From Haplodiscus bocki (taxonomy: Eukaryota): a stretch of 64,000 nt of DNA. Below, piece after piece: positions 1 to 59,861 of this stretch. The stretch covers positions 41,354,001-41,418,000 of the forward strand of contig OZ296648.1 of NCBI GenBank assembly GCA_965655095.1, in the 5' to 3' direction. Below the pieces are notes generated by a model. It did no database searches and was not told where the DNA came from. It was given only the letters and a program-made list of their open reading frames with translations. Within the stretch, counting starts at the first letter, position 1, and every line of letters starts with the position of its first letter. The position numbers and the translations under genes were made by a program.

Positions 1-600
1 CAGGTTTTAAATCAGTGTGTTCATTTGGTCTACCATTTTGTTTGTAATGATTACTTCCTTTTGAATCGAAATCTCATTGGATTTCAATTCGGGTTGTTTT
101 GGCCAGGTACGTAACGAAACTTAATTCGTTAAATATATCCTTAAGCAGTTTCGGATCTCTTTTTGCTTCATTTCAACAAAATCAACTGCTCTTTTTACAT
201 CCTGCAATCGAATTGGTTGCAGCTGATAGGTTTGGATCTGGATTAGTAACAGCTGGCTTTTCTTCTGCAGGTGCGTTTGAAATCTTTTTCAATTATTACC
301 TTCAATTGCTTCAGTTGTAGCCTTGGAGTGGACTGTTGTTTCATATGAATCCTAAGTGATTTTATTATCGGTTCGACAAGATCTGACGCATCATAGAGAA
401 AAACCCGCTCACCTAATTTCTCTGAGAATCGTAAGTGTTTCATTTTTGGAGGAGAGGTTGTTAGTCTTTCTGAATGTGCTCATTTTTCAGTTTCTTTTTT
501 TTGAAAGAATTAAAAAGGATTCGTTTCTGGTATGCGCACGTTAATCAATTCCTTTTAAAAAAATTTAATACATTTATAAAGTTTTCAATAGATGAATATT
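1..600 (-). pseudogene. Polinton-type conserved uncharacterised ORF remnant
   Basis: ORF 243-443 reads KHLRFSEKLGERVFLYDASDLVEPIIKSL, resembling the RLxxKLGxQxFHxDxxxxFEPxTKxL motif I recall from Polinton genes next to the ATPase. Confidence 0.5.
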
Positions 601-689
601 AGAGTAATTTTATAGTTGAACCTTTTAAGATCATCTTCTCTTAAAAAATCGCATACAATATTAGAAACAGTTCGTTTCTGGCAGACAAT

Positions 690-1180
690 CCGTGTTTTTT
701 TCCGGGGTTTCTTGTATTAGCAGAACTAGATTTTCATTTTGTTTTCTCCTTAGAAAAATCAATGGAAAGAACAATCTAGTCTCTGTCTTTCCATGCCTTT
801 TTAAGAAGATTCTGAATTTGATTTTCAGTCATATCAAATCCAGCATTATCTCCAAAAAAATTTTCGACCTCTTTTACAAACTTCTTTCACTGAAACGTTT
901 TTGTTGCCGCTATATCTTATAGTTCTTTTTGGTAAATGGAAGTGGGATTTGGACAAGCAATAAATAAATAAACCTGTAGGTCCCCGTCTTTTGAAAGATG
1001 GAACCATTGATTTTTGGTTGTAACCTAAGATATCATCAGAAGGTTCAACACAACAATGGTATACGTCAACTTGGTTATTCTAAAAATGTCTTTCATATTA
1101 CTGCTTTTCACTTTCTTCATCAAAAGATACATTTCACCAGAAAAAGGATGACCAGCAAACAAACTCTTTTTTAAGATGCG
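690..1180 (-). pseudogene. A32/FtsK-HerA-family genome-packaging ATPase (Polinton-type), degraded
   Basis: Manual translation: degenerate Walker A FAGHPFSGEMYL (~1127-1160), Walker B region SDDILG (~1027-1043), IYCLSKSHFHLPKRTIRYSGN (906-965; cf. YLSQSYFDLPKRTIRNN) and GDNAGFDMTENQIQNLLKKAWKD (~790-853). Confidence 0.8.
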
Positions 1181-1329
1181 TTTATATTTCACATTTATGT
1201 TTTAGTAAGGATTTTTTAAATGAAAAACTTCAACCAAACTGGGCTTCAGTTTTTTTTTCGGCATTTAATTTACTTCTTACAAAAAATATTTCTCATCGCC
1301 TAAAATGTTCAATTGGTTTGACCATCCTG

Positions 1330-1960
1330 ACAAAAAAATTGGTTCATTCTTAAAATATAGAACTTGTGAAAAATATTGTTCTACAAAAAGTTCTTGGTTA
1401 ATTTCTGTAAAAATCTAGGTTCATTTTTTTTAATGCCAAAACTTTTCCGTTTATCAATTTCATTTTGATTCTAAGAAAGAAACATTAGTGTTTTTTCATC
1501 AACAAAACTAAGAAAAAATGTACACAAAAAAACAAATTCTTTCTCGTCAGTTACTTTATCCGGTGAGCATTTTCCATGGATCTTCTCAAAGGAATTGTTA
1601 ATTTGCTGAGCTGGCTCATATTTTTTTGTGCTTCCAATTTTTATCTCTAACTATTACACGAATCATTTTTCATTCATTGATAAAGTACAAGCTGTAACAG
1701 TTAACGTTAATACTATTATCAACCCACAACCAGTAACAAACAAAGACACAGAAGTCGGAACTGTAGCGAAAATAGCAAAAATGTCGACTGTTTTTAAAAT
1801 TGCACATAAGACGTCATGTTTTTTTTTCAAAGAATTTTTTATTTAAGTTTTTCTTCTCTGAAGTTGGCGATAAGTTATTTAAGATTAGTAAATTCATAAT
1901 TGAAACTATTTTTTTCAATGCTTTTCTTTTCTATTGTATGTTCAAAATCGATAGATGACT
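1330..1960 (-). pseudogene. Polinton-associated predicted transmembrane ORF remnant
   Basis: Minus-strand LKTVDIFAIFATVPTSVSLFVTGCGLIIVLTLTVTACTLS, a hydrophobic SLxxTGxGLI segment of the kind seen in these elements. Confidence 0.45.
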
Positions 1961-1994
1961 CTAAAGTTGCTGATGCTTGTGATTTAGTAGTAAA

Positions 1995-2400
1995 CATTTA
2001 CATATACATATTTTCCAAGATGTAACCCCTTACCAGTCTGAGAGAACTTTTAAACATCTGGATTAGCAGATAAAGCTGCTTTTAGACTTTTAGATAGAGC
2101 TGGACTACCAGTTTTTGCTCCAACTTTGATTGCTATTTCAGATGTTTGCTTTGCTTTTGTAGCCATGTTTTTACCAGCCTCAGGAAAAGGTTTTCCATTT
2201 TTTCTAAAAGAAGTCTTAATTTTTCAAGCTCTTTTTGTATTATCATGGGAAGGCTCTGGTTTCTTTTTTCTACTTCATCTGTTTTCATCGACTGATCTTC
2301 TCCGACCGTTTTTTTTTCATCAACTTCAAAACTGGTGTCTAAGAAACTTGACGCCTCCAACACAGTATCAACAAACTTTGAGATGTTCAAGAGACACAAT
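1995..2400 (-). pseudogene. Small basic Polinton ORF remnant ending TGKGLHLGKYV (possible core/cement-like protein)
   Basis: Minus-strand GKNMATKAKQ..AIKVGAKTGSPALSKSLKAALSANPDV*KFSQTGKGLHLGKYV. The GxGL end resembles an adenain cleavage-type motif. Confidence 0.45.
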
Positions 2401-2479
2401 TTTTATTCTAAATTTTTGACTTCAATATCTTTTTGATAATTTTGGAAACTCTGATACTCAAAGTTGCACGTAAGTATGT

Positions 2480-4950
2480 ACCTAAGTTTTTCCTCCATCA
2501 AAGTAACTGTCAAAATTTCACTATTGAAATCAGCTCAGTATTTCTAATTGTCCAAAAAAATGTGATTTCATGCAAAACAGAAAATTTGATTTTTCATATT
2601 GTATTGATTCTGGTTCATGAAACTTTTGTATGAAGCTAGGTTCTCTAAATTGAAACGGAAAGGTTTCAGTTTTCTTGTGTCATTTGAAAAAGGTCCATTT
2701 ATACACTTACGTTTTGAATGGTTTTTGTGTATTGGAGTTTTATACCCGTTTTTGACATAAGCATAGTTGTTTAGGGACAACATTCCAAATTGAAGAGAAG
2801 TGTAGAACATTATTAAAAAAGGATTTTGATTAAACTTCACGATGTTACCCTTTTTTTCATGTTTTCATTGTAACACCATCAGTAACCGAACTTACATTTA
2901 TTAATATACATTTATTTTTATCTGGCGGTATCTCAACATTAAAAGAAACAGATTTACTGTTTCTCAAAAAAATTACTGTTTTCTTCTGAAACCTTTTTTT
3001 GCCCAAGATTTGTTTCGAAGTCCCGAAAAACGGTTGTGACAATTTTTTGTGAGAAACGTTCAAAACTGGACCTTGATGTGAAAGAGAATTTCTTCCTCCA
3101 TTTTTTGATTTTATCATGTTTTCCATTTTGTTGTCATCGTTAGGTCCCATTGGTGCGATTCAATTAGCAAAAGGTGGTGTTAGTGTTTCATTTTTTAAAT
3201 CTTCTTCCAAATTAAATCAACTTTTTTCAAACAAAACGACCTACTTGTTTCCTTTGGCATTTACTTGTTCTTTGCGAAAACAAATTTGGATTTTGTTTTT
3301 TTTTTCAACTTTTTTAAAGATAAAACTCCATATCAGAACCGGTTAGAACAAATATCCGTTTTCCATGTTCTTTTATACTCAAAAAAATAACAAAGAAGAT
3401 AGTATTTGTTGGTCAATTCCTTTTTTTTGCCATTGCTTCTTGCTGTTTTTTTGTCTGTTGAACAAAATTAACTGATTTTTGTACTTGAAAAAAATATTTC
3501 TTTTTATTTCTTCATGTGTGTATGCATTCGATTATACATTTGTTATAAATGTTATTCTGTATTAAAATGAAAACCTGCCGATAAAATCCATTCCAAAGTT
3601 TTCGTTAGTTGCAGAGTCATGTTTTTTGTTTCATCATCAAAATCAACTTTTCCTTTTTTTAAAGTCAACAACCTGAAATTTATCTGGAAGCACCTCCAAT
3701 ACTTGTATGTCAGAATCATTACATAATATGTCTGATATTTTTTTCAATTTCATTGTTTGTTAACTCCCTTTTAGAACCATGTTTCCAAGAGTAATATTTC
3801 TAAGGTTTTTAAACACTCAATTATACCAGTTCTCAGAGAAATTTCTTCAAATTCTTTTTTTTAGAGGAGTTTGAATCTATCTCTTTTTATTTCTGTCTTT
3901 CCGGCTTCCTTTACATGTAACTCACAATCATTTATTTCTCGTAGTTTTCTTGTTCTTTTTCATAGTTGTAGGATCAGTCTAATAACCTGGAGTAAAACGC
4001 GAAAGTTCAGTGGTGTGTTCAGTTCTAATGAAAGCAGCTCCATATACATCTGAGCTAGTTGTTCCTAACAACCAACTATCTGCTTCTGGTTTTAAGGGAA
4101 GTTTGAAGGGAAAAGCTTTTATTGGTTTGTTTACTTTAATATAGAGTACTTCCTGGGGGTTCTTTTTGTTTGACCATCAGGATTATGTGTTTTTCCAATA
4201 AAAAATTAAATGTGATAACCCATCATGCAATTTTCTCACTTTATGTTCCTATCAATAAAAACGCAAAAATAATTGCTTCACCATTAAAATCGACAAAACA
4301 AAGTAACATTTATCTTCTCTTCTCAAAAAAAATCTTTCAAAACAGACTTTATGTTAGTTTTTACATAACGCCAGATGAACACTTGTCGATTAGTTTGAAG
4401 GTAGAACTTCTTTTAATGGGTAAAAGTCATAGTTTAACTAACCACTAAAATCAAATGTGCATCCCTCATCATTCGCAAAAATTTCATGTTTTTTCTAGAA
4501 AAAACCTGTTTCTCCACCTAAATTGTATGGCTTCGGGATTTTTAAATGTTTCCTGTTCAAGTGGTTTTTCTTTTGCAAAGCTACTTTATATGTTTTTTCT
4601 AACATCAGTTATAAAATTTCCAATCGCACAATTTTGTTCAAACTGAATTTTCTAAGTTTTTGTTTCATTGACAAGTTTTCGAATCACAGTTTTTTTTCTT
4701 GAGCTTTTGTTATTTTTGTGTTCAATTAAGGAGTTTAACTACCATTCAAAACAAAACCAAGAACTTCTTTTTCGTTCCATTGGTGTCTGAAAAATACTTC
4801 CAATCTAATCTATTTTCATCAGCTCTAAATGTCGTGATTGACTGTAAAGCGTTATCAATTTCTGTTCTCTTATTCTCAAGTGGTAAGTGAAAATCTTGCA
4901 ATGATGGGTTAATAAAATTTAGAAGTTTAACATACTTAATTTAGTCAAAT
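2480..4950 (-). pseudogene. Two to three tandem minor-capsid (penton)-like gene remnants
   Basis: C-terminal motif twice: ADFNSEILTVTL (~2500) and VDFNGEAIIFAF (~4260). KCINGPFSND..FRFNLE (2568-2840). N-terminal motif PFKLPLKPEADSWLLGTTSSDVY (~4040-4120). FNVEIPP..INVSSVTDGVTMKT (2857-2950). Confidence 0.6.
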
Positions 4951-5559
4951 CCCAAGTTCCCTTCAAACAAAATCTCCAATATGTTGACGATTCTTGTACC
5001 CTAAGCCTTTAATTTTTTCCATTATCAAATTCAAAATCATTTTTAAAAAAGTATGTTCATTCGTTTTTTTTTTCATACCATGTTTAAATTCATTTTCTTT
5101 TGAATCAATTGTTTTTTTTCTAAAATTTGTTTCAAAAATTCCTGAATAACGTTTCCCTTCAATTGAAAACCTATTATTTCCTTCTGTTGTTTGAAAGTTG
5201 AGTTTTGTTCGTCGAACTTAAATACACATAGCACCCAATTTTCATCGCTTTTCGAAATTAGGAGAAAATTGAATGAGAGAGACGCCATTGTTTGATTTCA
5301 ATTTAAACTATAAAGTTTCTTGTGGTTTTGTTTGAGTTTGTTGAAAAAGCACACCAAGGTGTCTTAAAATTGGAAGCACGACCTCTCCGTTAACTAATTT
5401 GGAAAAATTTTGAAAACTTTATTTGATATATTCGTTAACACTTTTTTCTACTCTTTAGAGAAGTAATGTTTTGACAGTTTCAGTTTGGTGGGCAAAAGTT
5501 TTGATTCTTACGTATCTCAAACTGTTATGTATTTTTAGTTTTCTCGTTACCGTTTTTTG

Positions 5560-31638: not shown

Positions 31639-32622
31639 TGTAGAATTTTCAGGAATTTAACTTCCAACTCGATTAAACCGTAGTACCACTGTCCACGAGA
31701 CGGGGGACGGGCCGAGATCCACAAAATAATTATAACTCCAAAATCAATCAAAGGAGGATTCAACTTCGGAGGCGGTGGGGTTCTTCTGCAAAGTATATGC
31801 CTAACTCTGTAATTTTTATCGTTCAACTGAGAAGGGTGTCTCGTAGCTCTTTGACTGTTAGTTACGTAAATTGAAGAAGTTTGTGTCTGGCAAAGATTGT
31901 GAATTACTTTCTCACAGACAAATTTTCTCCGTCAATAAATACACTAATAATAAGATAATAATTGTCAACACAATAACTGCAGATAATATAGTTGGTTCAG
32001 ACTCACACATCCAATAATATCAGTTTAAATATCTCAATAAATACGTTTTATTTCATTAATAGCATCGAATAATTTGGAGACAATTTAATACTATAACTTT
32101 CCGTTGATAGTCAGTAAATCTCTCACTTCTACCGGAATTGGATCGAACACCAAAACCACAACTCAACAATTAATAAACGAAGAATTTCAAGTCTCACTAG
32201 ATTTTCGAGCGAAGAACTAATCGAATCTAACAGTCCCGGACTCTCCAACAACACTTCTCAAAATTACGATTTCCCAACTTCAGACCTCGACTAAGTTGAA
32301 GAAAACAACAAACGGCTTTAAGCAAAGTAGCAACTGCCCGGCAATTCAACTCACTTTCTTTTGGCAGCGTTTCGGGACGCTCCTTTCGCTTACGGCACTC
32401 TTGGTTTCGTATTTTTACCGCTAGGGCTATTTTCGGCCTTGTTATTATTCATCCGGTTAATCGCATCCAATAATTCGTAAAATGACTTATCAATTTTTCG
32501 CTAATTAATTCGTTTATTTCACTTCGGTGCAAATTTCATCAGTTTTGGTACTACTCGGTGTTTATTTTCTCTGCTTACATCAGTTATGATTAATTGATTT
32601 TGGTCGTATCCACTGGCAAAAC
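31639..32622. mobile_element. Candidate solo LTR (~980 bp) inserted in the G-tract
   Basis: Begins TGTAG, is flanked by GGGGG on both sides (31634-31638, 32623-32627) and contains AATAAA. The right end is AAAAC, lacking the terminal A. Confidence 0.4.
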
Positions 32623-34480
32623 GGGGGTGGTAAAACTGAGTAAGAAAATACCTCTTCGTTTCCATTCGTTTATGTCACCATTTTGATTGACAACCTCTTT
32701 CGGCTGATGTGTCAGCTATTATATTCGTCGCGAGTGACCAAGTACTTCCAAAATAAGTGGTTAAAATATCTTCCCTGACCATTCCCATCGTAATATCCAT
32801 GCAAAAATAAATGTCCGAAAAAAGGCGTAATTTTTGTCTAAAATTCAAAAATTAATTGTGTCTATCCTATACGTCCTAAATATAAAATGAGCACATCATT
32901 ACACGCGGTATTTAATGTAGTTTTTGGCAATGTATACTTTGTTATAGTTATTTTCAATATTCATGGTCGAAAAATTCGATTTTCTGAAAGTACTCAAAAT
33001 TTCATATCCGAAAAATCGATTTTTGGTCACTTTGAGGTCATTTTTCTCAACTTATAATTTTTTGCCAGGGCGGGGGTGATATTTTCCTGTTAGTAAATTT
33101 AAGTTAAAGTATTTTAACGCAAAGATGAGCTCTCTAGCTGGTCTCAAAAAAAAGTTATTCAATTTTCCGCAAAAGTACCGATTTTGGCCATTTTTGACTA
33201 CCTGGGTCCACATTCAAAGTCAATTTTCTCAACGTACAGGCAAAATTTCGAAAAATCCTCGATCTATTTCCTGGGGGAGGTTATTATGAACATTGTGTTA
33301 AATTTTCAGCTTTCTATCTTCAAAAAGGTGCGGGGGGGTTAGCCGTTTTGCAAGTCGACATTTTCCAAAAGCCGTGATTTTAGTCAGTTGCAATTTTGTG
33401 GGGCGGCCATTTGTAGCTTGCTTGTTCTATTGTTATTCTTCATTCCTCCCAATAATAAGCTTTCATTCGCTGTTAATATGGTCGATTTTTATTGGATATT
33501 CGTTAACTAATAAGCGAAAAACTGCGATTTTTGACGATTTTAGGCTATTTTGGGCGTTTTTTGGCGATTTCTTACTGAGTTCTCCAAAATGACAGATTAT
33601 AATCGATTCTTTTTTTCAAGGACATTAGTCCATTCAAATATCTTTCGTTTAAGACTAATACGAGCCATTTCTGATGCGTGATTCACTCAGAATAAATTTT
33701 TAACTGAAGTCAATTTGGCCATTTCCGGAGTGCACTTTTCGGTTACTACAATTTTTCAATATCTTAAATTCGTCCGATTTTGCTGATATTCCAAACTTAA
33801 GTTTTCCTATGGATGTAGTTTACAATGTTGAAAACCGTTTGTCGATATCTTTCTTCATCTTTGAGAAATAAGCAAGCAAACATTGGGGAACATTAAAAAA
33901 ACAGGTCTAATTTTGAGCAGCGAGAGCGTAAATATGCTAATACGTGGGGTGGTGGCGGCCGTGTGCGTGGTCAAAATTCACTCCAAAAGCACTCCTATTG
34001 TATTCTTTTTGTATTCATAACACTTTGTTTCCACTCCGCTTTCACTTTTATGCGCTTCTAAAGTTGCAACTGAACTGCGAAATCACAATTTTACCATTTT
34101 CCGGACCGTAATAATTTTCGTTTTAATTTTTCGACAACTTTTAATTTTCAGAATGCGGTGAAAATCATCCAACTTGTTTGTCTTGGAATGTAGTTTTTAT
34201 TGCTGAAAACCGTTTTGCTCTATCTACAATAGTCTTTGAGAAAATGGACGTCAAAGTTGGGGTTCGAATTAGACCAACTTTTAAAACTTATGCTGCTGTT
34301 GCTTTTCTATGTTAATACACGTGACAAGGTCGTTCCAAAATAACTAATACTTGCTCCGCGGCTTGTGCACATTCCAACGTAGTGCTTATTCAGTTCAATA
34401 TCATTTTTCACGTATCATTCTCACTGCTAAATTTCACTCAGTTCACGTGCACTGACACAGCAAATTTCAATATTGCAAAA

Positions 34481-35560
34481 ATGGCAAATATGATTGATTT
34501 GGGTTCTAAACGTAAACTCTCTTATTATTCTAATTTCGAAACACGTAGTTTAAATGTTTTAGAGCTTATGGAAGGCATTTTTGGCCCTCCTCCTATTAAT
34601 CCCGTTAATATTGAAGATTCCCTTATTAATGAAAATTGGCCCCGTTTTAATGTTATTTCCGATGTTAATTTTACTGTTAATTCCCCCCTTGTCCCTTGTA
34701 TCTTGTCTGGTGTTAATGTAAAGCCTACGGGCGTATTAAAAGTGTTCTGTGATCATCCTAATTTAACTTGGAACCATTTAACTAACATTCCCTCGCGTCC
34801 CTTAACCGGTATTACCAAAGGTCCCGAGTATGCCGTTACCCGTAGTTTTATAAATTCCATCCAGGCCGATATGAACTTCAGCCATTGTTTAACCCCGTAT
34901 TGTTTTGTTGATCAGATAATTACTAGTTGTATGGGATTGTTAATAAAAGGACCGTGGTTCAGGTACGCTCATACAGAAATCGGCGGCGGCGCTTCATTTG
35001 CTTTACTGAACACGGGAATCAAAATTTGGTGCGCTTCAACTTCATCTACCGGTACTCGCTTCTTCGAACGGTGTTGCCACTCCCCCGAAGGCTTTATAGA
35101 ATTAATGCAGCGGGGTCCCCGTGAACGAGAGTCGCGCTATCTGCAGTTTACTTTTCAACGTCCCGGCGATTTAATTTACATTCCTCACCTCCTTGCTCAT
35201 GCCGTATTAACCTTGGATACTGGTTCGCCGACGATTTTATCTGGATGGGACGCCGCCACCACTACAAATCAGGAGATTATCATACAGATTTTGGATGAGT
35301 ATACTTTTGGTGTGCGTCGTGGTAATTGGCGCGAAATTTTCCGTGAAAAGGGTTTAGTAGCATTACGTGAATGGGTGTTTTCTCCAGCAACGGGCCCTCA
35401 GGAAAGTAAAAACAAGTTAGTAAAACATTGGCAATATTGGGAAAAATATAGTCCGGACTTATTAAACACGTTATCTATCGAGGGGCCTGTCACTAACAAA
35501 AAGGTAAAACGGCGTCCGCCTATTCATACAAAGGAATTTCGCTCCGCGCATTCTTCTTAA
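34481..35560 (+). CDS. Intronless JmjC-domain Fe(II)/2-oxoglutarate dioxygenase (KDM2/KDM7-like motif pattern), 359 aa
   Basis: HTEIGGG (HxE, His at 34970), GIKIW (2-OG Lys), QRPGDLIYIPHLLAHAV (distal His at 35198); basic C-terminus KKVKRR; AATAAA at 35702. Confidence 0.9.
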   Translation: MANMIDLGSKRKLSYYSNFETRSLNVLELMEGIFGPPPINPVNIEDSLINENWPRFNVISDVNFTVNSPLVPCILSGVNVKPTGVLKVFCDHPNLTWNHLTNIPSRPLTGITKGPEYAVTRSFINSIQADMNFSHCLTPYCFVDQIITSCMGLLIKGPWFRYAHTEIGGGASFALLNTGIKIWCASTSSTGTRFFERCCHSPEGFIELMQRGPRERESRYLQFTFQRPGDLIYIPHLLAHAVLTLDTGSPTILSGWDAATTTNQEIIIQILDEYTFGVRRGNWREIFREKGLVALREWVFSPATGPQESKNKLVKHWQYWEKYSPDLLNTLSIEGPVTNKKVKRRPPIHTKEFRSAHSS

Positions 35561-35927
35561 TCATCACACACAGGTTATTATCAACGTTATTATTTTGTTT
35601 GTAGCCTCCCCTCTGACTATCAACGCAGAAAAATATTGGAATTAAAGCGGTTAATTTTAAACAGTGATTAATAGTGACAGTAAATACCAGGTTTGAAAAT
35701 TAATAAATTAATAAGGTCATAAATACATTTTCTAAAAATTTCTTTTTGTTTTTTTTTATGAATCCCATATCCCCCCCAATTGGACTACTACTCTCCCGAT
35801 TAGTTGCTAAAGCGGATATATAATATTTTATTCAATTTTACACGCACATAACAACAAAAATTACCCCGCAATGTTACACAAATTTACTTTTACGTCTTTC
35901 AGTGCCCGTTATTCTTTCGTTCCGCGC

Positions 35928-36808
35928 TTATTGGGTTGAGCTAGACTGCCCCGACGCCATGGCCAATGCCTTTCTTTTCTCTATTGCCTTCTTCATTTTA
36001 TTCGCCGGTGAAAACACAACAGCGGCGGTGGTATCCACACTCTCGGCATCACTGTCCACTGTTACATCTTGATCTGGGGCGCTCGATCCAGCCGCCACTC
36101 CTGGGGTCTGCGAAGCTGTAGAAGGGGGCGCGTTGTCAACCCTGAGGGAAACAGTACTCCCCGTGAAGGTAGAGGCTGCACTCGAGATTGAGGGCTGAAT
36201 ATGGGATAGCATTGCCCTTTGGAATCGAGCAATGTCCACTCTCTGCCTCTGCGGCGGTTGAGGATATAGCTGAAAGTGGGGTGTCTCGGGTATCTCCCCT
36301 TGCTGAAGGTCCCTCCATAGGTATTGATGGAGTGGCGCCCGCCAGTGGAAGGGGGTGCTCATGGGGTTCCCCTCTGCTGCAGGAGCTTCGTCCGGCAATG
36401 CTAATATCCTGGTCATCGTCAACATGAAATTGGCCCTTTCTGGCATTTCCAAAGAAGCTCTGATTACCCCAAACATGACTTCCCGGAACATTTCACAATA
36501 TAGACTCAGCTTCATCCACTGTGGATACCAGAGGGCATCAAGGGCGCAATACTTCTCCATATGTAGGAAAACGTGGTCGGAGTTAGGATGGGGACTTTCA
36601 ATTTTGTTTAACTTATAGGTTGCTATTGGGTTCCCCACGCGTAGAGTCAGGGGCAGAATCCCAACAGTCGTTGGCATATTGGCCTCTCGCACCTCCTCGG
36701 GGCTTCGTTGTAAAATCTGTTGGCGTGTGGGTATCCCGGAAAATTTCGGAGCATCGAATCATTCACGGAAGGTGCAGTGCTCACGGGTGTTGGAGTGTAC
36801 GGCAACAT
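35928..36808 (-). CDS. Orphan protein convergent with JmjC (254-aa open frame; probable true ATG at 36808 via one frameshift near 36759)
   Basis: GC-richer open frame with a globular-looking N-half, a Ser/Ala/Asp-rich tail and basic KMKKAIEKRK; minus-strand AATAAA at 35827-35832. Confidence 0.65.
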
Positions 36809-37299
36809 TTTTCTTCGTTTCTTTTTCTTTTAAAACTTTACTTTTCTTCAAGAGGCTTAGCAAGACGTTAGAATTTTCGGTTTTAAGCAAGAGAGGATTT
36901 CAACTGGACGCAACAAAAACTGAGTAACAACTGACGGCGAAAATAAATTCTCTCTCTACCGCGGCGGTTATTTATCCAGGGAACATGATTCACGTTTTGA
37001 CGGTTCGACGCAAATGTTTTACTTCCTTTCATCTTACGTAACATCGAAAAAACTAATTTAGCAACCCATTGTCTTCATGTTCCTATTTAGTTTGTACGTG
37101 AAAATGCATCAATTTTTTTATTGGCACAATAATAAAAGAGTACGATTTGACCTGTTGATGGCTATTTAAAGTTAAAATAACTTCTCTAGCGCAGTTAGTG
37201 ATATATCAGAAACAACCAAGTGACGAACATTACAACAATGCAATGAACAGTCAATTAAGGGGCCAGAACCGCGAACAGCAGGCAATCAATTTTTTTTCG

Positions 37300-48609: not shown

Positions 48610-50075
48610 CAAAATCATTTGAAAAAAAACTGAAATGCGTCTGTTTTGTTCAACCAGGTTTCCACATTTTGCGCGTCAGCGCAATGAGCAGCACCGAATC
48701 TCAGCTGTTCTTGGCCTGTTAATACCTATGCACGCCTTATGCACAAAAAGATTTGGGCATTTTGAAACTCTGACTGCTTATAACCAAAGTGTAAGTCAAA
48801 GTAGCTTTCAACTTAATAATCAAAGTATATCGTCGAATACAATCAAAATCTATCGACGTTCGATTTTCATTTTCCCTAAGTCTTGTGTAATCCGACCGAA
48901 ATATTAACCTTTTGGGAAAAATAAGATTGAAATTTCAACTTCATTTCTGATAAAAAAAATAGCATTATGCTGGAAAAAATGGAATGAGTTGAATCCATCC
49001 CCCTCGACAATAATATAATTTGACTGGCATTCGCAGATATGCTATTATTCAGGATCAGGGAAACAGATTTATGTCCGTAGCATCAAAGAGTTTTAGTAGC
49101 AAAAACCTCATCCTATGGCATAATATTCCCGAGTAGATCAGTGGGGGAATGATCGTGCATAGATTAAAAAACTGGAAAAATTGAATCCTTGTTCAATTTT
49201 TTGAAATCCCTATTTTTTGTTAATGTTTGAGAAAATTTGTATAGTTTTGTGCATTCAACCAGCAATTTGGGACTTCTTCATGCCGAGGGTATGAGCCTCG
49301 TCCATTCTGTTTACTCAAAACTTGACATGCTCGCGTTGAGGAAACCTGGGTTGACCACCCAGGGACGACACAGGTCATTCTTACTAAGACAGGGATGGGG
49401 TACATGGAAACCAGAGATGACTTAGTAAAGTCCCAGGGATGCACCCATAGGGTTTACTAAGTTATCCTTGGGTGCAGCCCTGGGACCGTAGTAAGTTATC
49501 CTTGGGCACAGTGCGTACACGTTTCATAATTGTGTAACGTTCTGATAATTTATGCATTTCACCAAAAATCAAGAAGAATCAACAATTGGAGATGAAATCT
49601 GATGAACTTTATACCTGTGGAAGGTATTTTGTCAACGAACATGTTTAAAAATATCAGTAATAAGGAATTTGCTATTATCATGTTTTTTAATGAAAAATTT
49701 GTTTGAAAAAAAGTAAAAAATGAAACAATTATTTTTCCAAATTACCTTATCTCGTCCTTTTGGATAAGATTATTCTTGTCGTTATCTCAACCGCCGCAAA
49801 ACGCTTGGTTCTGAATAGACTGTTTGATTCTTTTTAAATTTTTGTAGAGATCAGATCTGAAATTTCTGCAATCGGGTGCAGAGCATTCTTACGACGGTGC
49901 CTCGCTGGACACAAGGCATTCTTACTAAGGCCATCCCTGGACAAAGGGCGTTCTTACTAAGACCATCCCTGGGTACAGGGCTTTCTTACCAAGGCCATCC
50001 AAGGAACCAGGGCTTTCTTAACAAATTCTTGTCACGGGTTTTGTCAGGGACAGGGCTGGGGTACAGGGTGGTGCC

Positions 50076-50849
50076 TGTCGCGTACGCGGATTAAACCGTC
50101 GCGCGTGTCTACTTAGCGAGCTCGTAACCGGCGTTACCGTAGCAATGGTGGCGCAACGGTATCCGTCCGGGACTCGTAAACGAAACGTCCGGCGATCGAT
50201 CGTAATCAAGCTCTTGCAGGATTGAGGACGAAAACAACGTGTCGCCATAAGGAAAATCCCAATTGAAGGAGATCCGGAAATCTTTTAGGTAACTTTATTT
50301 TCCAAGAGAATGAATAGGCTTCTTGTCGCGTACGCGAATTAAATCAAGTAAACGGTCACGCACGCGGATTAAACCGTCGCGTGTGTCTATTTAGCGAACT
50401 CGTAACCCGCGTTACCGTAGCAATGGTGGCGCAACGGTATGCGTCCGGGTCTCGTAAGCGAATGGTCCAGCGATCGATTCCCGACCGGACCGAACCTTTT
50501 TCACTCCGGTTTTTGAACTTCGAAGTTGTTAATCGGCTGAAATTTGCATATGAAAGTTTGTTTTGCCAATCAGAGCCGATTATGCAAATTTCTTCCGAAA
50601 GCATGAACAGACGCCCTCTAGCGGATGAAATTGAAACCGGCTAAACTAAGAAAAACTGAACATAGGAGCTTGTTTCATCGACACCGAACAGACGGTTCAA
50701 AGAAATACGTTCGGACAAAGTGTTAATTTGTTAATAATTCCGCTGAATTCAAGCCATTTCTGTTGGAATAAACTCTCTGTTGGTAATTCAAACTTGGATC
50801 TAACAGCTTTATTTCCACGGATTTAACCGGTTTATCGGGCCACGCCACA
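50076..50849 (+). repeat. 5' LTR
   Basis: TGTCGCG...GCCACA; one mismatch seen versus the 3' LTR (ctacttag vs ctatttag); AATAAA at ~50768. Confidence 0.98.
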
Positions 50850-50852
50850 TTT

Positions 50853-50870
50853 TGGCGCCCCACAAGGGAC
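50853..50870 (+). promoter_or_regulatory. Primer-binding site, tRNA-Lys-like
   Basis: TGGCGCCCCACAAGGGAC(TTGA), 3 nt after the LTR; cf. the tRNA-Lys(UUU) complement TGGCGCCCGAACAGGGAC(TTGA). Confidence 0.8.
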
Positions 50871-51626
50871 TTGATTACCTTGTTACTCCGATTATCGGCG
50901 TTAGCTCAGCCGTCAACTCAAACTTCTCACCAGCTCACCGGAAGATTCAGAGGCTCATCGGCAGATCGAGAGAGTTATTCGATAGATCAACCCGCAGAAG
51001 CAACTTGTCGGTGATAACTTGGACAGATTTTCGGCAAACCCGAAAGCAGAGACAGTGCATCGGCCAAGCCGGACGAAATAAAGCGGAACGACCCCAGTTT
51101 GCAAGACACCTTCGCAGAACGTGCAGTGCAACCAGGATAGTCAGAGTCGTGGCTTCGAGGAGTGCGAACAGTTGCGTCTGAGAGCTCACCGGTGATGTCT
51201 GCGGCTGTGTGATTGGTTGGGTAGCTTTCTGGGTGCGGGTCAACAGCGCTAGGTGCTGTAGTGCGAGCTGTTGTGTGCGGGGACGCTGGTGTTTGCTGTA
51301 GTGGAGCAAGATGTTCGCCATCCCATCGGCAGTCACCAGTTAGGCATGGTCGACACAACCGGTTAGAGAGGTGAATCGGGGTTGCATAGCCAACTCAGAA
51401 AGGACATCGGCTTGAGAGTGAACTACACTTATAAACTCAAACTGAACTCTTGTATTGGTTAATTGATGTCAACACTTTGCCCGTAGGATTTTTGGCCTTA
51501 GCCGATTGTGTATTAGCGAGTAACCGTACACTTATTTTTGGGAACGGGTTTTTGGAAACTTTCACAACTGTTTGCTCGCTAGAAAGGGTAAATTGAAATT
51601 GGGGCAGCAAAACGGCCAAAAGTCCA

Positions 51627-52246
51627 ATGGTCTATGTAATCGGCGCTAGTTCACTTCGGTACGCAGTTGACGATTCACCGTTTAAGTTTGGCGGAGGTTG
51701 CTTGCGAGAACTTTTGCGACTCCCGGGTTGAGTTTCAACCCGAACGCGCGAAACTACTTGAAAAATCTAGACAATTTGCTAAGCACCGGTTGCTTGCGGC
51801 ATCGAGCCGATATCGTGATTTGGCACGATCTGATTAATAACACGCTTTCAAGTCACCGTAGCAACAACTATAACGCGTGTTCCGTTCAGCAGCTCTTGCA
51901 CATACTAGCAAGACATAGACACCGGATAGCCGCCATTGTCTATATTCAGCGTGAAAAAACTCCATACGTGTTTCGGCAGCTGTGCTCATCGGGCATTTTG
52001 ATCTTACCGGTGGGAAAACTACTGTCACCGAAGAAACGAACTAACTTCGCTTTTCGAAGTGACCTCACGACCGTTCATCCTCGTTCCGATACTGAACGAA
52101 GTTTATTACGGACCGTACTCCGGAACGGAACCGATCTGCGAAAGCTGTTGAATCGACGTTCACAGACTAAACGGTCGTCGCAAGATCAATGTCCTGCAGG
52201 ACGGATTGCCCAGAGTAACATTACCGTTACTGTTACTTTCAATTAA
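51627..52246 (+). pseudogene. SGNH/GDSL-hydrolase-like accessory ORF inside the BEL element (one frameshift near 51690)
   Basis: MVYVIGASSLR (block I, ATG 51627), TPGLS (block II), IVIWHDLINN (block III), SDLTTVHP (block V). Confidence 0.65.
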
Positions 52247-52677
52247 ATTTTCTTTCACTGTGTTTTCTTTAGTTTTCAGTCGTTTGGTTCTAACGGAACT
52301 TGACGAGCCTCTAGAACTTTCAGTAGTTCGTGGCACGGAAAGTTTCCGGTTCAGGCCAAAAGTAGTGAAGGTAAACGGATACGCAGTCGATCGCTAAATC
52401 ATATTGATTTGAGTGAACCGTTCGGTCCGGTGTCACTACCGAACGTCCGAAGATAGCATTACCGCAATCTAATCATCGAGTGTGAACTCCTGTTTGAGGA
52501 GTTGCATCCTAGACATCCTCGAATACCCGTCCCTTAGTCTTGACCGGAGCCCAAAGGGCCTCTAGAACTTTGATTAGTTTGTGGCACGGAAAGTTTCGGA
52601 ACAGACCAATTCCCTGGGGGTGCGCGACATTAGAACTTTCGGTAGTTCCTGACGCAAAACCCAATCCCCAGCTCGCC

Positions 52678-55600
52678 ATGGAGGAAAAGTTGCAGAAGCT
52701 CTACGCTAGCAGAACAAAACTGCAGAAGGAGCTCAATATCTGTCATGAATTGATAGATGAAGCGATTGATCGAAAAGATAGGCGCGTGAAAGTGGAAAAG
52801 CTCGTCAACGACTCGAAGTCTACATTCCAGGCTGCGTTTGAGAAGAATGAAGACCGTCTCAAATTGGCAGCGAAAACCGAAAACCCGACGGACCTCACAA
52901 GAATTCCCGAGGAGTGGTCGGAAGGCTTAATTGCTCTAAACGATGAGTACTTGAGTGAAGCACGAGCCTATATCAATTCAATCGGTGAAACTGAAGAGGG
53001 AGGATCCCGGCATTCTGATTCGCAAAGCACAGCGAAGCGATCCAGCAAACATTCAAAGAGCAGGGCAACCAGCAAGAGCCAAGTTTCTGTTTCCTCTAGC
53101 CAACGACGTCTTCAACAGAAAATTGCCAGGTTAAAGCACGAGGAAGTAGAATTCCAAAACGCAGCTGAACTACGAATTGCTCAGGAAAAAGCAGAACAAG
53201 AAAGATTGGAGGCCGAACACCATGCGAGGCAGACCGAACAGCGGGCTGAGCAGGAAGCTGTGGAAACTCAGCGGCGGGCGCAGCAAGAATCTTCCCTGGC
53301 GTGTCAAAAAGCCGAGCATGAAGCTGAGCTTGCCAGGCGAAAGGCTATGCTCGCAGTGTCTGAGCTGCAGAAGAAAAATCGGCAACGACTTGAGCAAGCA
53401 AAGTTGGATGAAGTTGCGGTAGAAGATCTGGAGAGCTCCGACGATGAAGAAGAGGCCGACGGCGATCGGTTTGAGGGACTTCTCGACAATGCGACAAATG
53501 GTTCCGAACGAACGGAGGCTTGGGTTAATAGCGCTGGTGCCACTGGGGCCGTTGGCTTGCAAGCTGGTTCAGAGGTCGCCGTTGCTTAGACCCTCAACGA
53601 CGATGCTCTCCCGAGACTTGTCGAGACTTCATCGCAAGGTCCTGCGGCACCTGATCAATTTCCCAAGACCGTTGATTCCGATAACCAACCTGATTTTCTT
53701 GAAGATCCACAGCCGAATGTTCGCTTCCATGTTCGGAATCGAAACCAGCCCAAACCAAATGTGGCTTCAGCACTTGCTCCATCATCAGTTGCGGTTCCCA
53801 AGGCTTCGAAGAAGTTAGACGAACTCTTTCATAATTTTCTCAAGACACCTGCTTCCTCCAAGAACCTAACAACTGTTGTCACCGATAACACGCTTCAAAC
53901 GCAAAACACTCAGAAGCACTACTCATGTAGTATCGGAGGCACTACGTACTACCACCAGACCCCTTACATGACATCCTCGGTTTTTCCGACCTATCAACCT
54001 GCAACGACGGCTGAAAATACTTGCAGTTACGCACCGGCTACATCGATTGCACTCGGAGTTGAGAACACGGAGTCTCATCGGCCGGTAGAAGATTTGTCCT
54101 CGTGGAACGCCACTTTGACCATGAATGATCTTGCCAAACTTCTAACCGTTTCGCGGAAAGATCCACTGCCCGAGTAGAAACTTTCAACCTTCGATGGCAA
54201 CCCACTTCAGTGGCATGAGTGGTACGGACAATTCAAGAGTGCAGTCGACCAAGCAGCGATAACTGTCGAGGTAAAGATGACGTATTTGAAGACGTTAGTC
54301 TCCGGAAAGGCGAAAATTGCCTTTCAGGGATTTGCGTATAGTGGTGCGCTGAACCGTGACGCTCTGAAGGCGCTTGAACGAAAGTTCGGGCAGCCCCGAG
54401 CAGTTGTCACCGCTCATCTGGAAAAGTTGAGCCACTACCCCGCTGTAAAGATCCACAATTCAGAAAGCATAATCAATTATACTTGTGCAATCTCCAGCCT
54501 TATTGCAGTTTTCCAGTCTCTGAAGTATGATGCTGATCTCTTCAGTTCTGCGCTCTTGAACCAGGCTGTTCAAAAGCTTCCACCGAACCTCAAAGAGTCT
54601 TGGTAGCTTCAAATGGTCAAACAAGGATGGCTACGTCCAAGCCTCCTCGATTTCAACCTGTGGTTGCAGGAGAAAGCCGAAGCACATGATCGGATGCAAT
54701 TTGGCTCTGCAACAAAACCAAAAGGAGAACCAAATTCAACGACAACAAAAGTGAAGACCGCGACAAAGACTTTCGCTTCCGCATCCGAATCGACAACGCC
54801 GTCATCCGGGACCAATGAATTGTGTCCTGTCTGCAAGGGAAAACACCCTCTCTTCAGATGTAAAGTGTTTTGCGAAAAGACTCCCAATCAAAGAGCAAAG
54901 ATTGTTGCCGACAACAAGCTTTGCTTCTCCTGCTTCGGAAAGGGTCATAATGCACGTAATTGTTCCCGTGCTCGAACTTGCGGCAAAGACAATTGCAAAT
55001 TGACTCACAATAGTCTCCTTCACGGCGCTGATCGCGTGTTCCCGCCAAAAGGATTGGAACAAAACTCTCCCTTTACCACGTCGCAGCAGACCACTCAAGA
55101 TACATCAGCTGCAAAACCGAAAGCTGTTTCGACAGCTCACAACAGCACCTCAAGTAGAAAGACGTCTACAACGGGTATGAAAGGCCTGCTACAAATCGTC
55201 GAACTCGAAGTTTTCTCGCCTACTAAAGCAATCAACGTTTTCGCTCTTTGTGACTCCGGATGTAGTCACACGTGGATCTCAGACGACTTGGCGCAGAAGT
55301 TGTCCCTAGATGGAAAAGTGACTTCCATCACCGTAAACGGGATCAATTGCCAAGAAGTGGTCCAAACCCGAACGGTTGAGGTGAACTTTTGCTCGATCTT
55401 ATCCGACGAAGGACGAGAGGTTTTCACAGTCAACGCGTTCACAAAATCTTCGATTAATGTTGGCAGAGACTTCATCGACGTTGCAGCCTTGAAATCCAAA
55501 CAACCTCACCTGAATCCAGTGCCAGGTACGCAAATCGACTACTCCAGCGTGAGTATGATACTTGGGCAGGATGCATACGAAGCCATCCGTCCAATCGAGT

Positions 55601-58600
55601 ACTTCGTATCAAGTACTGACAAATCGTCAACCGTAGCAGTACGATTGCCAATCGGATGGGTCCTCAGTGGTCCCTTGCCTTCAACATCGAACTTGTCGGC
55701 TTCTTGCTTCGAGGCGAGTAGCGAAGAATACTTAACTCTTGCTCGAGAAGTTAAACTTTGGTACCATATGGAAACCTTCGGAGCTGTGAAAAACGTAGAT
55801 CCCAGTTCGACGGAGGAATCACGTGCCAAGGAAATCCTGCACTCAACCACGTTCCATGATGGAAAAAAGTACGTGGTGGGAATGTTGTGGCGAGAACCCG
55901 ACATCGAGTTGCCGAACAACTACTATGCCGCTCTCGCTCAACTGAAGTCCCTCGAAAATCGCCTGGGCAAGGACGCAGACCTGCGGGAAAGGTACGCTCA
56001 GACAATCAAAGATGATCTTGAGAAGGGATATGTGAAAACAGTTGAACCTAGTGAGTCGCAGAAGCGTTCAAAACGTGAATGGTACTTGCCTCACCACCCG
56101 GTGCTCAATCCGAACGAGCCCGGGAAAGTCCGGAGAGTCCTCAACGGTGCTGCATTGTTTCACAAACAGTCCCTGAACTCTGCATTGATGGCTGGACCGG
56201 ACCTATTGCAAAACCTAATGTACATCATCTTGAAGTTTCGCCAACACCGATACGCAGTCTCGGCGGACATCGAAGGGATGTTCCTGCAGGTAGGCGTGCC
56301 AGACCAGGACCAAACTTCAATTCGTTTTTTGTGGCGGGAGGACCCCACTCAAAAAGTGGTTGTGCACCAGTACACCCGTCACATATTCGGTGCCAAAGAC
56401 TCCGTCACCCGTCATCCGTCAAAGACCTGCGCAAACTATGCGCTACAAAGAACCGCAGACGACAATTGCAAGGAGTTCCCCCGAGAAGGCGGAAGTGTTC
56501 GGAATAATTTTTACATGGACGACTACTTGGAATCCTTTGCTACGTCCGAAGAAGCAACGGAAAGGTGCCAAGACCTTGTGACTCTGCTGAAGCGAGGTGG
56601 CTTCAAGCTAACGAAGTTTGTTAGCAACTTCAATCTGCCACCAAGTCTGCCACCGTTACAAGATCAGTCACCAGGCACACCGGAAGTCTGTGAACTGTCT
56701 TCACACGTTCTTGGATTGAAATGGAATCAACGCAGCGACACATTAGTAGTAAGCCATGGAGTGAACAGATCGGTTACTGAACCAGTTACACAGCGGTTAT
56801 TGTTGAGTCGCGTTGCCAGTATCTTCGATCCCATTGGTTTAGTTGCACCCTACACAATCAAAGCTCGACTTATGCTCAAGGAAGTGTGGCGATTGCATGG
56901 CCAGCAGTGGGATGAAGCCCTCTCAGAAGAACTGATCGAAGAATTCCTGCATTGGAGCAAAGCATTACCAGAACTCAGTACGCTAGAACTGCAAAGATGC
57001 TACTTCAGTGAGCCTGTGGAATCCCTTGAGCTTCATGTTTTTGGTGACAGTTCAAAGGAAGTGTTTGGAGCGGTCGCATTTCTTCGTGCCCGGCAAAAGA
57101 GCGACGGCTCAACGCAACTGGCATTTGTGATCGGAAAAGGACGCGTTGCGCCAATGAAGTCTTTGACAATCCCCAAGTTAGAGCTGCAAGCTGCACTGCT
57201 AGCTTCCCGCTTAAAACGCCACGTCGAGGCAGCGCTTACGCTTGCGGTTGAAAAGGTTTACATGTGGTCCGGTAGTAGCACGGTCCTCCAGTGGCTTCAC
57301 TCGCCCGAAAAGCAACCGGTCTTCGTCGCGAACCGCGTATCGGAGATTTTAGACGCATCAACCGTGGATGAATGGAATCATGTGTCTTCAACGAACAACC
57401 CCGCCGATGTGGTCATGAGGGGAATATCGATTGATGAACTGAAGAGCAGTGCGTGGATAACCGGTCCCGAGTTTCTTGGTACTGATGATTGGCCATTCCA
57501 ACCGCCAACTCAACGCGTCCCAGTGAAGTCACCGAAGTTGATACAGGATCCGCCGGTTGCTCAGCAGACGACGATGTCAAGTGCATCTAAATGCGTCGAG
57601 CCATTCATCATATGGACTAAGTACAGCTCCTACACGAAATTAGTGCGCACGGTTGCCTACATGCTGCGGGTCAACCCCAAGTTTCGAGATTCGGTCAGAA
57701 CGTCAACAATCGATCCCGGAGAATTTCGTCGAGCTGAAGCAAAGCTACTGTTGTTGGCACAAAGTGACATATTCCCAAAAGAACAAAAAGCGCTCGCAAA
57801 AAGAGAATACTTTGCTTCCAACAGTATCATAGCTGCGTTCGTTCCTTTTGTGGGACAAAATGGATTGATTCGAGCAGCGGGACGACTGAAACGGCTATCT
57901 GCTGTTCCGTATGAAACAAAACATCCGGTAGTTCTTGATGATCGTCACCCGCTTGCTCGGCTCTACTTGAAGCACGTTCATGACAGCAACCACCACCAAG
58001 GCGTTGATTTCCTGCGTGCTCATGTACAGAAAACTTTCGCAGTGCTAAAACTCCGTTCAACTCTGCGCTCCATCACCTCGTGTTGTGTCACTTGTCGAAA
58101 ACATCGCGCAACGCCAGTGACGCCTTTGATGGCCGATCTCCCAAAAGAGCGTTTAGGGTACCAAGAACGCCCATTCACGTATACGGGGGTGGACTATTTT
58201 GGTCCCTTCCACGTCTCCGTTAGACGAAGTACCGAAAAACGTTGGGGGTTCCTATTTACCTGCATGACGACGCGCGCCGTTCACAGAGAGATTGTGCCTA
58301 AAATGGACACCAGCTCATGTGTCATGGGCATTGAGCGGTTTGCGGCGCGTCGTGGACATCCACATACGATCTGGTCTGACAACGGCACCAACTTTGTTGG
58401 TGCTGACAAAGAGTTGGCTCTGTGTTTCGCGAACCTTGATCCCGACAAGGTAGCGCAAACGTCTGCGTCCAAAAGCATTAAATGGAAGCTCAACCCGCCG
58501 TCAGCACCCCATCACGGAGGGGTTTGGGAGCGCCTTGTTCAGAGCTGTGAGCGTCTCTTCTACAAAATACTTGGAAATCGAAGGCTTACGGACGAAGTGT

Positions 58601-59106
58601 TGAGAACTACGTTTTGCTTGGTTGAGCAGTTTCTGAATTCAAGGCCGTTAACGGCGGCTAGCTCCGATCCAAAGGATCTAGAAGCGCTCACCCCAAATCA
58701 CTTTCTCTTCGGTGGTCCAAGCGCTGCATCATTGTTTCATGTGCCAGAGAAAGCTCAACCTGACGATCACCGGCAACGGTATCGAAAGTCAATCGCGTAC
58801 GCCAATGCAATTTGGCATCGGTGGTTGACAGAGTATGCCCCAACCCTTAATGTTCGATCGAAGTGGAACCGGCAAGACCCTACCACACTGAAGACTGGAG
58901 ACTTAGTTTGGATCGTTGAACCAACAAGTCCCCGCGGGTTCTACCCGCTCGCTCGAGTTAAAGAACTCCATTACGGATGCGACAGCATTACTCGTTCAGC
59001 TGTCATCCGATCTTCGGCCGGCGTATTCACTCGACCGACCACAAAACTTGTTTCTGTTTTCAACTCGTCTTCTCCCAGGCGGGAGGATGTCGCGTACGCG
59101 GATTAA
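52678..59106 (+). CDS. BEL/Pao Gag-Pol polyprotein frame with three in-frame TAGs (53587, 54175, 54604)
   Basis: Coiled coil; DUF1759-like LPE*KLSTFDGNPLQWHEW; three zinc knuckles; protease ALCDSG; RT YMDD; RNase H LHVFGDSS/TIPKLELQAA; integrase HHCC, GVDYFGP, SDNGTNF, GGVWE. All segments are in one frame and the stop lies inside the 3' LTR. Confidence 0.95.
59077..59087 (+). promoter_or_regulatory. Polypurine tract
   Basis: AGGCGGGAGGA immediately before the 3' LTR. Confidence 0.85.
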
Positions 59107-59861
59107 ACCGTCGCGCGTGTCTATTTAGCGAGCTCGTAACCGGCGTTACCGTAGCAATGGTGGCGCAACGGTATCCGTCCGGGACTCGTAAACGAAACGT
59201 CCGGCGATCGATCGTAATCAAGCTCTTGCAGGATTGAGGACGAAAACAACGTGTCGCCATAAGGAAAATCCCAATTGAAGGAGATCCGGAAATCTTTTAG
59301 GTAACTTTATTTTCCAAGAGAATGAATAGGCTTCTTGTCGCGTACGCGAATTAAATCAAGTAAACGGTCACGCACGCGGATTAAACCGTCGCGTGTGTCT
59401 ATTTAGCGAACTCGTAACCCGCGTTACCGTAGCAATGGTGGCGCAACGGTATGCGTCCGGGTCTCGTAAGCGAATGGTCCAGCGATCGATTCCCGACCGG
59501 ACCGAACCTTTTTCACTCCGGTTTTTGAACTTCGAAGTTGTTAATCGGCTGAAATTTGCATATGAAAGTTTGTTTTGCCAATCAGAGCCGATTATGCAAA
59601 TTTCTTCCGAAAGCATGAACAGACGCCCTCTAGCGGATGAAATTGAAACCGGCTAAACTAAGAAAAACTGAACATAGGAGCTTGTTTCATCGACACCGAA
59701 CAGACGGTTCAAAGAAATACGTTCGGACAAAGTGTTAATTTGTTAATAATTCCGCTGAATTCAAGCCATTTCTGTTGGAATAAACTCTCTGTTGGTAATT
59801 CAAACTTGGATCTAACAGCTTTATTTCCACGGATTTAACCGGTTTATCGGGCCACGCCACA
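59088..59861 (+). repeat. 3' LTR
   Basis: 774-bp copy of 50076-50849. Confidence 0.98.

Follow-up and report, generated by a model that had tools for sequence, protein, structure and literature searches.

The window considered here is a stretch of 64,000 nucleotides from Haplodiscus bocki (GenBank assembly GCA_965655095.1, contig OZ296648.1, positions 41,354,001 to 41,418,000 of the forward strand). It contains a truncated copy of a long terminal repeat (LTR) retrotransposon that consists of one complete LTR, the polypurine tract, a gene designated ORF2, and 1.3 kb of internal sequence, and that is set in mostly unique DNA. Inside the LTR, antisense to the genes of the element, is an open reading frame (ORF) for a protein resembling the JmjC oxygenases. 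The frame is open over 34382..35560 of the plus strand and the first ATG, at 34481, begins a protein of 359 amino acids (aa) with the motifs AHTEIGGG (H164-T-E166), GIKIW (K181), QRPGDLIYIP, and HAVLT (H240), followed by a basic tail, KKVKRRPP; in the coordinates of the sense-oriented LTR, the ORF spans approximately 209-1288. It is nearly certain that this ORF is a selected gene of the retroelement, borne by its LTR. A single-exon ORF of this length with all of these motifs had been listed in an earlier note on this DNA, as had the lack of PHD, CXXC, or F-box partner domains; the motifs are present in the window translation and Pfam finds none of the three domains in the window protein. The features of the locus are given in Table 1.

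Table 1. Features of the truncated retroelement, with positions counted from the first nucleotide of the window.
Feature	Position	Strand	Comment
Complete 4.1-kb LTR (3' LTR in the sense of the element)	31639..35769	-	94% identical over its full length to both reference LTRs
JmjC-like ORF	34481..35560	+	359 aa plus stop; one exon; opposite in strand to the element, on the U3 side of the LTR
Codons for H164-T-E166 (proposed first two Fe(II) ligands)	34970..34978	+	Conserved; in register with HxD of a JMJD4-like exon of the host
Codon for K181 in GIKIW (proposed 2-oxoglutarate-binding Lys)	35021..35023	+	Invariant in the family alignment (A5); in register with the Lys of that exon
Codon for H240 in HAVLT (proposed third Fe(II) ligand)	35198..35200	+	Invariant in A5; in register with the His of that exon
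AATAAA, candidate poly(A) signal of the antisense gene	35702..35707	+	141 nt past the JmjC-like stop, still within the LTR
Polypurine tract beside the 3' LTR	35770..35783	-	Minus strand reads ..AATTGGGGGGGA; the reference element has AAGTGGGGGGAA at the same place
Remaining 1.3 kb of internal region	35770..37068	-	Copy breaks off at 37068, then unique DNA
ORF2	35928..36692	-	Last sense-strand gene of the element; 254 aa here, open frame of 297-306 aa in most copies

On its LTR ends, target duplication, gene order, primer-binding site, and polypurine tract, the carrier is a Ty3/gypsy (Metaviridae) LTR retrotransposon. The reference element (C1:113575706-113594374) is 18,669 bp long and has direct LTRs of 4,139 bp that are 99.6% identical, with TGT..ACA ends and a 5-bp target duplication, GATTA; the primer-binding site, TGGCGTTCTGGGTGGG, follows the 5' LTR and the polypurine tract, AAGTGGGGGGAA, precedes the 3' LTR. 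The internal genes run opposite to the JmjC-like ORF, which is thus antisense to gag-pol, and the order of their Pfam domains is zf-CCHC (gag), Asp_protease_2, RVT_1, RT_RNaseH, Integrase_H2C2, and rve. Pol is followed by a large ORF in the position of env and then by an ORF of approximately 300 aa, which is ORF2. The env-position ORF is split into 360 and 345 aa in the reference element (L032:6496-8613 (-)) and has 826 aa in another subfamily (L060:7835-9997 (-)); neither it nor ORF2 has a match in Pfam, NCBIfam, PDB, or the ESM Atlas.

Positions 1-5440 of the reference element align with 31639-37068 of the window at 94% identity, and there is no other match in the window. On the plus strand the window LTR starts with TGTAGAATTT and ends with GAATCCCATA; other copies finish ..CACA. 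The right flank of the fragment is single-copy DNA and the left flank has only an old short repeat. The earlier note had portrayed the ORF as an intact island between decayed retroelements, a picture that has to be abandoned, since the ORF belongs to the retroelement fragment itself. The 1.6 kb of transposon-arm-like DNA that it placed upstream is indeed retroelement sequence, but it is the remainder of the LTR and is 2.84 kb long. A second ORF arranged tail-to-tail with the first, each with its own AATAAA, had also been described; the arrangement and both signals exist (TTTATT at 35827, or AATAAA on the minus strand, lies downstream of the ORF2 stop), but this second ORF is simply the last sense-strand gene of the element and not a paired cargo gene. 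The AATAAA of the antisense gene is found 79-141 nt past the JmjC-like stop, inside the LTR, in all 20 copies examined.

Copies were surveyed by a six-frame search of the window's own genome (1.5 Gb, with 12 large scaffolds). At least 113 near-full copies of the ORF, with 92-100% aa identity, were found, and 93 of these 113 have no stop; as a point on the other side, the 113 are only the best-scoring of 2,647 first-look candidates, so that the intact fraction is biased upward. The copies occur in same-strand pairs with a spacing of approximately 14.5 kb, as expected for an ORF contained entirely in the LTR of an 18.7-kb element. Reverse transcription duplicates a gene in this position, so that each provirus has two copies and every solo LTR has one. 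The two LTRs of one element are 98.9-99.6% identical, while separate elements differ by approximately 4-5%; the family is young, high-copy, and recently active. With many dispersed copies, sharp common ends, and purifying selection, the proposal that the gene is cargo of a mobile element has held up under the copy search and the comparison of substitution rates that the earlier note itself had named as tests.

The evidence for selection is specific to the frame. Among 18 copies, the mean nonsynonymous divergence (dN) is 0.017 and the mean synonymous divergence (dS) is 0.111 in the ORF frame, a ratio of 0.15; of the five other frames, four have ratios of 0.9-3.0 by the same calculation, and the fifth, the complementary frame with the same wobble position as the ORF, has a ratio of 0.22. 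A chance ORF is ruled out by this frame-specific dN/dS. Between subfamilies and assemblies, at 57-82% aa identity, dN/dS is 0.17-0.21, and ORF2 has a ratio of 0.17 in its own frame. Since the LTR pairs are near-identical and the elements are 4-5% apart, most of the differences arose in replicating lineages, where selection can act.

Some other arrangements of the LTR were seen in the same genome. The part of the LTR upstream of the ORF is found in same-strand pairs 4.6-4.7 kb apart (C10:9302272/9306946, C3:60051201/60055902, C1:183305496/183310225, C6:78019937/78024666, and C155:24449/29156), which may be derivatives with a short internal region between LTRs or tandem LTRs. Three JmjC-bearing LTR copies lie on one strand at C8:16649465, 16663949, and 16666867 (L014, L008, and L015), with spacings of 14.5 kb and 2.9 kb, and could be an element with an adjacent or nested LTR, or a recombinant. 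In Logan contigs of three runs from the source organism, the summed word depth at 32544-34353 is approximately 10 times that over the ORF (34535-35800), and the depth over the ORF is approximately 10-20 times that of the internal region (35802-37068); this pattern suggests many LTR-only or ORF-less derivatives, although depth is a poor measure here.

The association of the gene with the element is not confined to one subfamily. The genome has subfamilies with open frames of 392, 376, and 354 aa, in pairs 14.2-14.7 kb apart, and the 354-aa type has just 36% identity with the window protein. An element of this last type (C4) has 3.2-kb LTRs that are 99.3% identical and a target duplication of GAAGG, and its ORF is likewise antisense and at the same place within the LTR. 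Compared with the reference element, its identity is 32% in gag, 45-59% in pol, 29-53% in the env-position ORF, and 24% in ORF2; with gag, pol, and the other ORFs comparably divergent, the JmjC-like gene has diverged in step with the rest of the element, and the unchanged layout at 36% identity argues that it is an old, selected part of it. The earlier note had supposed that a mobile element captured a stand-alone JmjC. Nothing found here favors this; two word-indexed homology searches and an exhaustive search of representative proteins, in databases of 5.8 and 1.8 billion proteins, yielded nothing beyond unnamed members and fragments of the family, with no named relative and no host-gene donor, and even at 36% identity the divergence of the gene parallels that of gag and pol.

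Relatives with 50-70% identity in other ENA assemblies also adjoin gypsy genes on the opposite strand, either upstream of gag (L037) or downstream of an ORF2-like gene (L063 and L064), and one contig has a solo LTR bearing an intact ORF. Sequencing runs labeled as coral or coral-reef metagenome share 6-13% of the 31-mers of the stretch, an overlap that taken by itself would point to a reef cnidarian as the probable host. A third word-indexed search, with P0268 as the query, gave only two further relatives, P0271 and P0272. P0272 is distant, with 19% identity and replacement of the first metal His, and its neighbors on a 14-kb contig (L038, ENA ERZ17099311) are a protease of the adenovirus type (Peptidase_C5) and a zinc-finger/endonuclease-VII-like protein of 1,446 aa. 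Such surroundings resemble a Polinton-type or viral element, a hint that members of the wider family are also carried by other mobile or viral elements. A 225-aa fragment in NCBI with 59% identity (P0122) is filed under a metagenome-assembled genome, 'Cyanobacteria bacterium J06629_18', on a 1.9-kb contig that is most likely a stray piece of a host animal binned into that genome.

Whether the protein is a JmjC enzyme has to be judged from several signals, each of them weak. Sub-threshold matches to the Pfam family JmjC_2 were found in 28 of 43 family members and to JmjC in 10 of the 43; the window protein matches JmjC_2 with an E-value of 0.038 and 14 bits, below the gathering cut-off of 22. 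Searches with language-model features gave a score of 0.97, with 198 shared features, to clusters named as JmjC domain-containing protein, and the score of 0.97 holds both for the window protein and for a subfamily member with 36% identity; clusters of JMJD4 are among the matches. The top 50 PDB matches from Foldseek are almost all JmjC proteins (PHF2, KDM2A, KDM7A, JMJD6, JMJD3, NO66, PHF8, and TYW5), although weak, with a best E-value of 8e-3 and a template-modeling (TM) score of approximately 0.17. A shape search of the ESM Atlas has JmjC or Cupin_8 clusters in 8 of 10 rows with TM scores of at most 0.33, and VIA-align predicts a cupin-like core at residues 157-253 and gives Z-scores of 4.0-4.1 to JMJD6, which is also the structural match of highest sequence identity (22-25% over approximately 90 residues). 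In an hhalign comparison with a host JMJD4-like exon that itself passes the Pfam threshold, H164/E166, K181, and H240 are in register with the HxD, K, and H of the exon; a four-exon host JmjC alignment (A4) was too poorly aligned for use. E166, K181, and H240 are invariant among relatives with 19-100% identity (alignment A5) and H164 is kept in all but one of them. The Lys, in GxKxW, is 17 residues after the first His, and the HxE...H triad and this Lys have the canonical spacing of JmjC proteins.

Against this identification stand the strengths of the individual matches. In every search the match to JmjC falls short of a curated or conventional threshold of significance; even the lowest E-value of any family member in Pfam, 7e-4, is under the gathering score, and the alignment to the host JMJD4-like exon has an E-value of 0.019 and a probability of 2%, which is not significant. 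The VIA-align Z-scores do not exceed 5.4 and match generic cupins. Both AlphaFold2 models are poor (pLDDT of 37 and 47), and with models of such low confidence the outcome of the structure searches is no more than suggestive. PDB chains, searched by sequence and by profile, gave only chance immunoglobulin matches. The protein could therefore have a novel fold, with short motifs that resemble those of JmjC by chance, as the sub-threshold signals and the poor models would allow. A novel fold is improbable, however, since four different searches (Pfam, Foldseek, the shape search, and the language-model features, these last in two members with a mutual identity of 36%) are in agreement and the conserved H, E, K, and H have the canonical spacing. 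A JmjC fold is highly probable. The protein is most likely a very divergent Fe(II)/2-oxoglutarate (2OG) oxygenase of the JmjC/cupin fold with the metal triad and the 2OG Lys intact, and we lean, with moderate confidence, toward its being catalytically active.

Assignment within the JmjC oxygenases (PF02373/PF08007, cupin clan, including KDM2/KDM7/PHF and JMJD6/JMJD4) is less clear. The protein is like these enzymes in its HxE...H triad, GxKxW Lys, PxxxxHxV motif, and predicted cupin-like core, but it is under every family threshold, is encoded by a retrotransposon, has 359 aa, and is without partner domains; Pfam finds no JHD (PF17811), PHD, CXXC, F-box, or LRR in the window protein or the 43 members. 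The earlier note saw a KDM2/KDM7-type pattern. The motifs and the top Foldseek ranks (E of approximately 0.01) do resemble the KDM2/KDM7 (JHDM1/PHF8) demethylases, but the resemblance is equally common to JMJD6-type hydroxylases, all of it is too weak for assignment to a subfamily, and the JHD and partner domains of those demethylases are absent. The best JmjC match of the host (C2:42462552-42462902; L039) is KDM5-like, with a Pfam E-value of 5.7e-42, and lies inside an open frame that continues without a break for 1,464 aa; the recognizable JmjC genes of this genome thus have long intronless stretches as well.

In the reference Pol, RNase H and integrase are separated by an insert of 350 aa (L036:3434-4501 (-), or C1:113585434-113586501), in a part of the element that the window copy lacks. 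The insert matches the macrodomain chains of human TARG1/OARD1 (PDB 2l8r and 4j5q) with an E-value of 1.4e-14 and a DarG macrodomain model with an E-value of 3e-6. By this similarity, the insert is predicted to be an ADP-ribose-removing domain of the TARG1 type inside a gypsy Pol. One may speculate that a Ty3/gypsy lineage of reef animals has long carried its own 'eraser' enzymes for chromatin or host defense, a JmjC-type oxygenase antisense in the LTR and a TARG1-type ADP-ribose hydrolase in Pol, and that solo LTRs supply the oxygenase in trans, such that even dead insertions would aid escape from heterochromatic silencing; as a whole this proposal is unlikely to be right in every part, and we offer it as the boldest of those made here.

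The explanation preferred overall, again with moderate confidence, is that the ORF is an LTR-embedded antisense accessory gene for a JmjC-like oxygenase acting for the element. A putative antisense promoter within the remaining 2.8 kb of the LTR would drive the gene, and the basic tail, which resembles a nuclear localization signal, would carry the protein into the nucleus. There it would act in trans to the benefit of the element through oxidative loss of a methyl mark or through hydroxylation of a chromatin or host-restriction protein. The best single guess is that the enzyme counters heterochromatic silencing of the element family; a role as an anti-silencing histone demethylase is tentative, and a role as a protein hydroxylase is about as likely. 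In the latter case, also a doubtful assignment when taken by itself, the product would be a JmjC hydroxylase of protein or RNA, of the JMJD6, JMJD4, JMJD5, or TYW5 kind, that modifies a host factor in splicing, translation, or restriction, or a protein of the element, and thereby aids replication. The GxKxWC and P..xxHxVL motifs align best with the host JMJD4-like exon, and the identity to JMJD6, the JMJD4 clusters in the feature search, and the absence of chromatin-reader domains by Pfam point in the same direction, as does the TARG1-type macrodomain, another eraser of protein or nucleic-acid modification. However, Foldseek places PHF2, KDM2A, and KDM7A slightly above JMJD6, and none of these similarities is strong enough to assign a subfamily.

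The antisense gene or its transcript could tune sense transcription as a form of copy-number control, or the protein could act without catalysis, like the JmjC protein Epe1 of fission yeast, which is reported to have a non-enzymatic action (PMC7192584). A gene antisense within U3 would be transcribed in collision with, or its RNA would pair to, the sense RNA, and regulation by antisense RNA has been raised as one possible role of the extra antisense ORFs of plants (PMC7264820). Self-regulation of this sort is nevertheless quite improbable given a dN/dS of 0.15-0.21 and the retention of the proposed metal and 2OG residues in relatives with as little as 19-36% identity, which indicate a selected and probably catalytic protein and not RNA alone. 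The ORF is also intronless and intact and the window copy is in mostly unique DNA, as might be expected of an ordinary host retrogene or a host JmjC gene that merely lies among transposons. The recognizable JmjC genes of the host are other loci, above the Pfam threshold, and the gene studied here is always within the LTR, has hundreds of copies with identical sharp LTR ends and target duplications, and has changed in parallel with gag and pol; a host retrogene is refuted by the number of copies and the anatomy of the LTR, and an origin as a host gene has a vanishingly small probability.

Accessory coding sequences are known from other LTR elements. The sag gene of mouse mammary tumor virus (MMTV) is in U3 of the LTR in the sense orientation, and HBZ of human T-cell leukemia virus type 1 (HTLV-1) is expressed from an antisense promoter in the 3' LTR, with its coding sequence outside the LTR. 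Both resemble the JmjC-like gene in having an accessory-protein coding sequence or promoter in the LTR or antisense, but neither is an oxygenase. HTLV is also noted in a review of additional ORFs (PMC7264820). In plants, antisense additional ORFs (Grande gene23, RIRE2, and Retand) are placed between pol and the 3' LTR, and their products have no resemblance to known proteins; that of Grande reportedly has its own promoter, and some of these plant proteins are nuclear (PMC7264820). What they have in common with the present case is a conserved ORF that runs opposite to gag-pol close to the 3' end; the plant ORFs have one copy per element, whereas the JmjC-like ORF is in the LTR, has two copies, is kept on solo LTRs, and has an enzyme signature. 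It consequently falls outside the aORF-3R class (between pol and the 3' LTR; PMC7264820), being inside both LTRs.

An enzymatic parallel is known from orchids, where Ty3/gypsy elements of Phalaenopsis have an additional ORF for an AlkB-type 2OG dioxygenase with m6A (N6-methyladenosine) RNA demethylase activity in vitro (PMC9289625). In that case too, a large Ty3/gypsy lineage has a fixed ORF for an Fe/2OG dioxygenase that has been proposed to work against host surveillance (PMC9289625). The enzyme is of the AlkB and not the JmjC type, the host is a plant, and the abstract does not place the ORF in the LTR (PMC9289625); the present case is known from sequence. In two reports on the VANDAL DNA transposons of Arabidopsis, VANC is described as an anti-silencing protein with sequence-specific binding (PMC5735166, PMC10398659). 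VANC is likewise a transposon-encoded protein directed against silencing of its own family, demonstrated in its case and hypothesized here, but it comes from a DNA transposon and, as described there, is a binding protein and no dioxygenase. Literature searches found no transposon- or retrotransposon-encoded JmjC and no macrodomain in a gypsy Pol, in a library that is incomplete and gives no proof of absence. Extra ORFs are known from LTR retrotransposons, antisense ones among them.

Transposons are usually viewed as passive targets of silencing and very few are known to encode enzymes able to fight back. Should the protein erase repressive marks or inactivate a restriction factor, it would represent a directly testable counter-defense of a retrotransposon in an early-branching animal, and LTRs would be carriers of genes as well as regulatory sequence. 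The anti-silencing interpretation, if true, would make this the first histone demethylase or anti-silencing system known to be encoded by a retrotransposon, and would show LTR space put to a new use. While diverging to 36% identity, the gene has been kept under purifying selection and has stayed in the LTR, the only part of the element that persists in solo form. The family is also without names or Pfam domains among billions of database proteins and extends the range of JmjC-like sequences.

A separate LTR element lies at 50064-59375 of the window. It is richer in G+C (48%), has 300-bp LTRs that are 98% identical and 9,012 bp apart, and holds an intact ORF of 1,497 aa (54613-59106); it is unrelated to the JmjC-bearing family.

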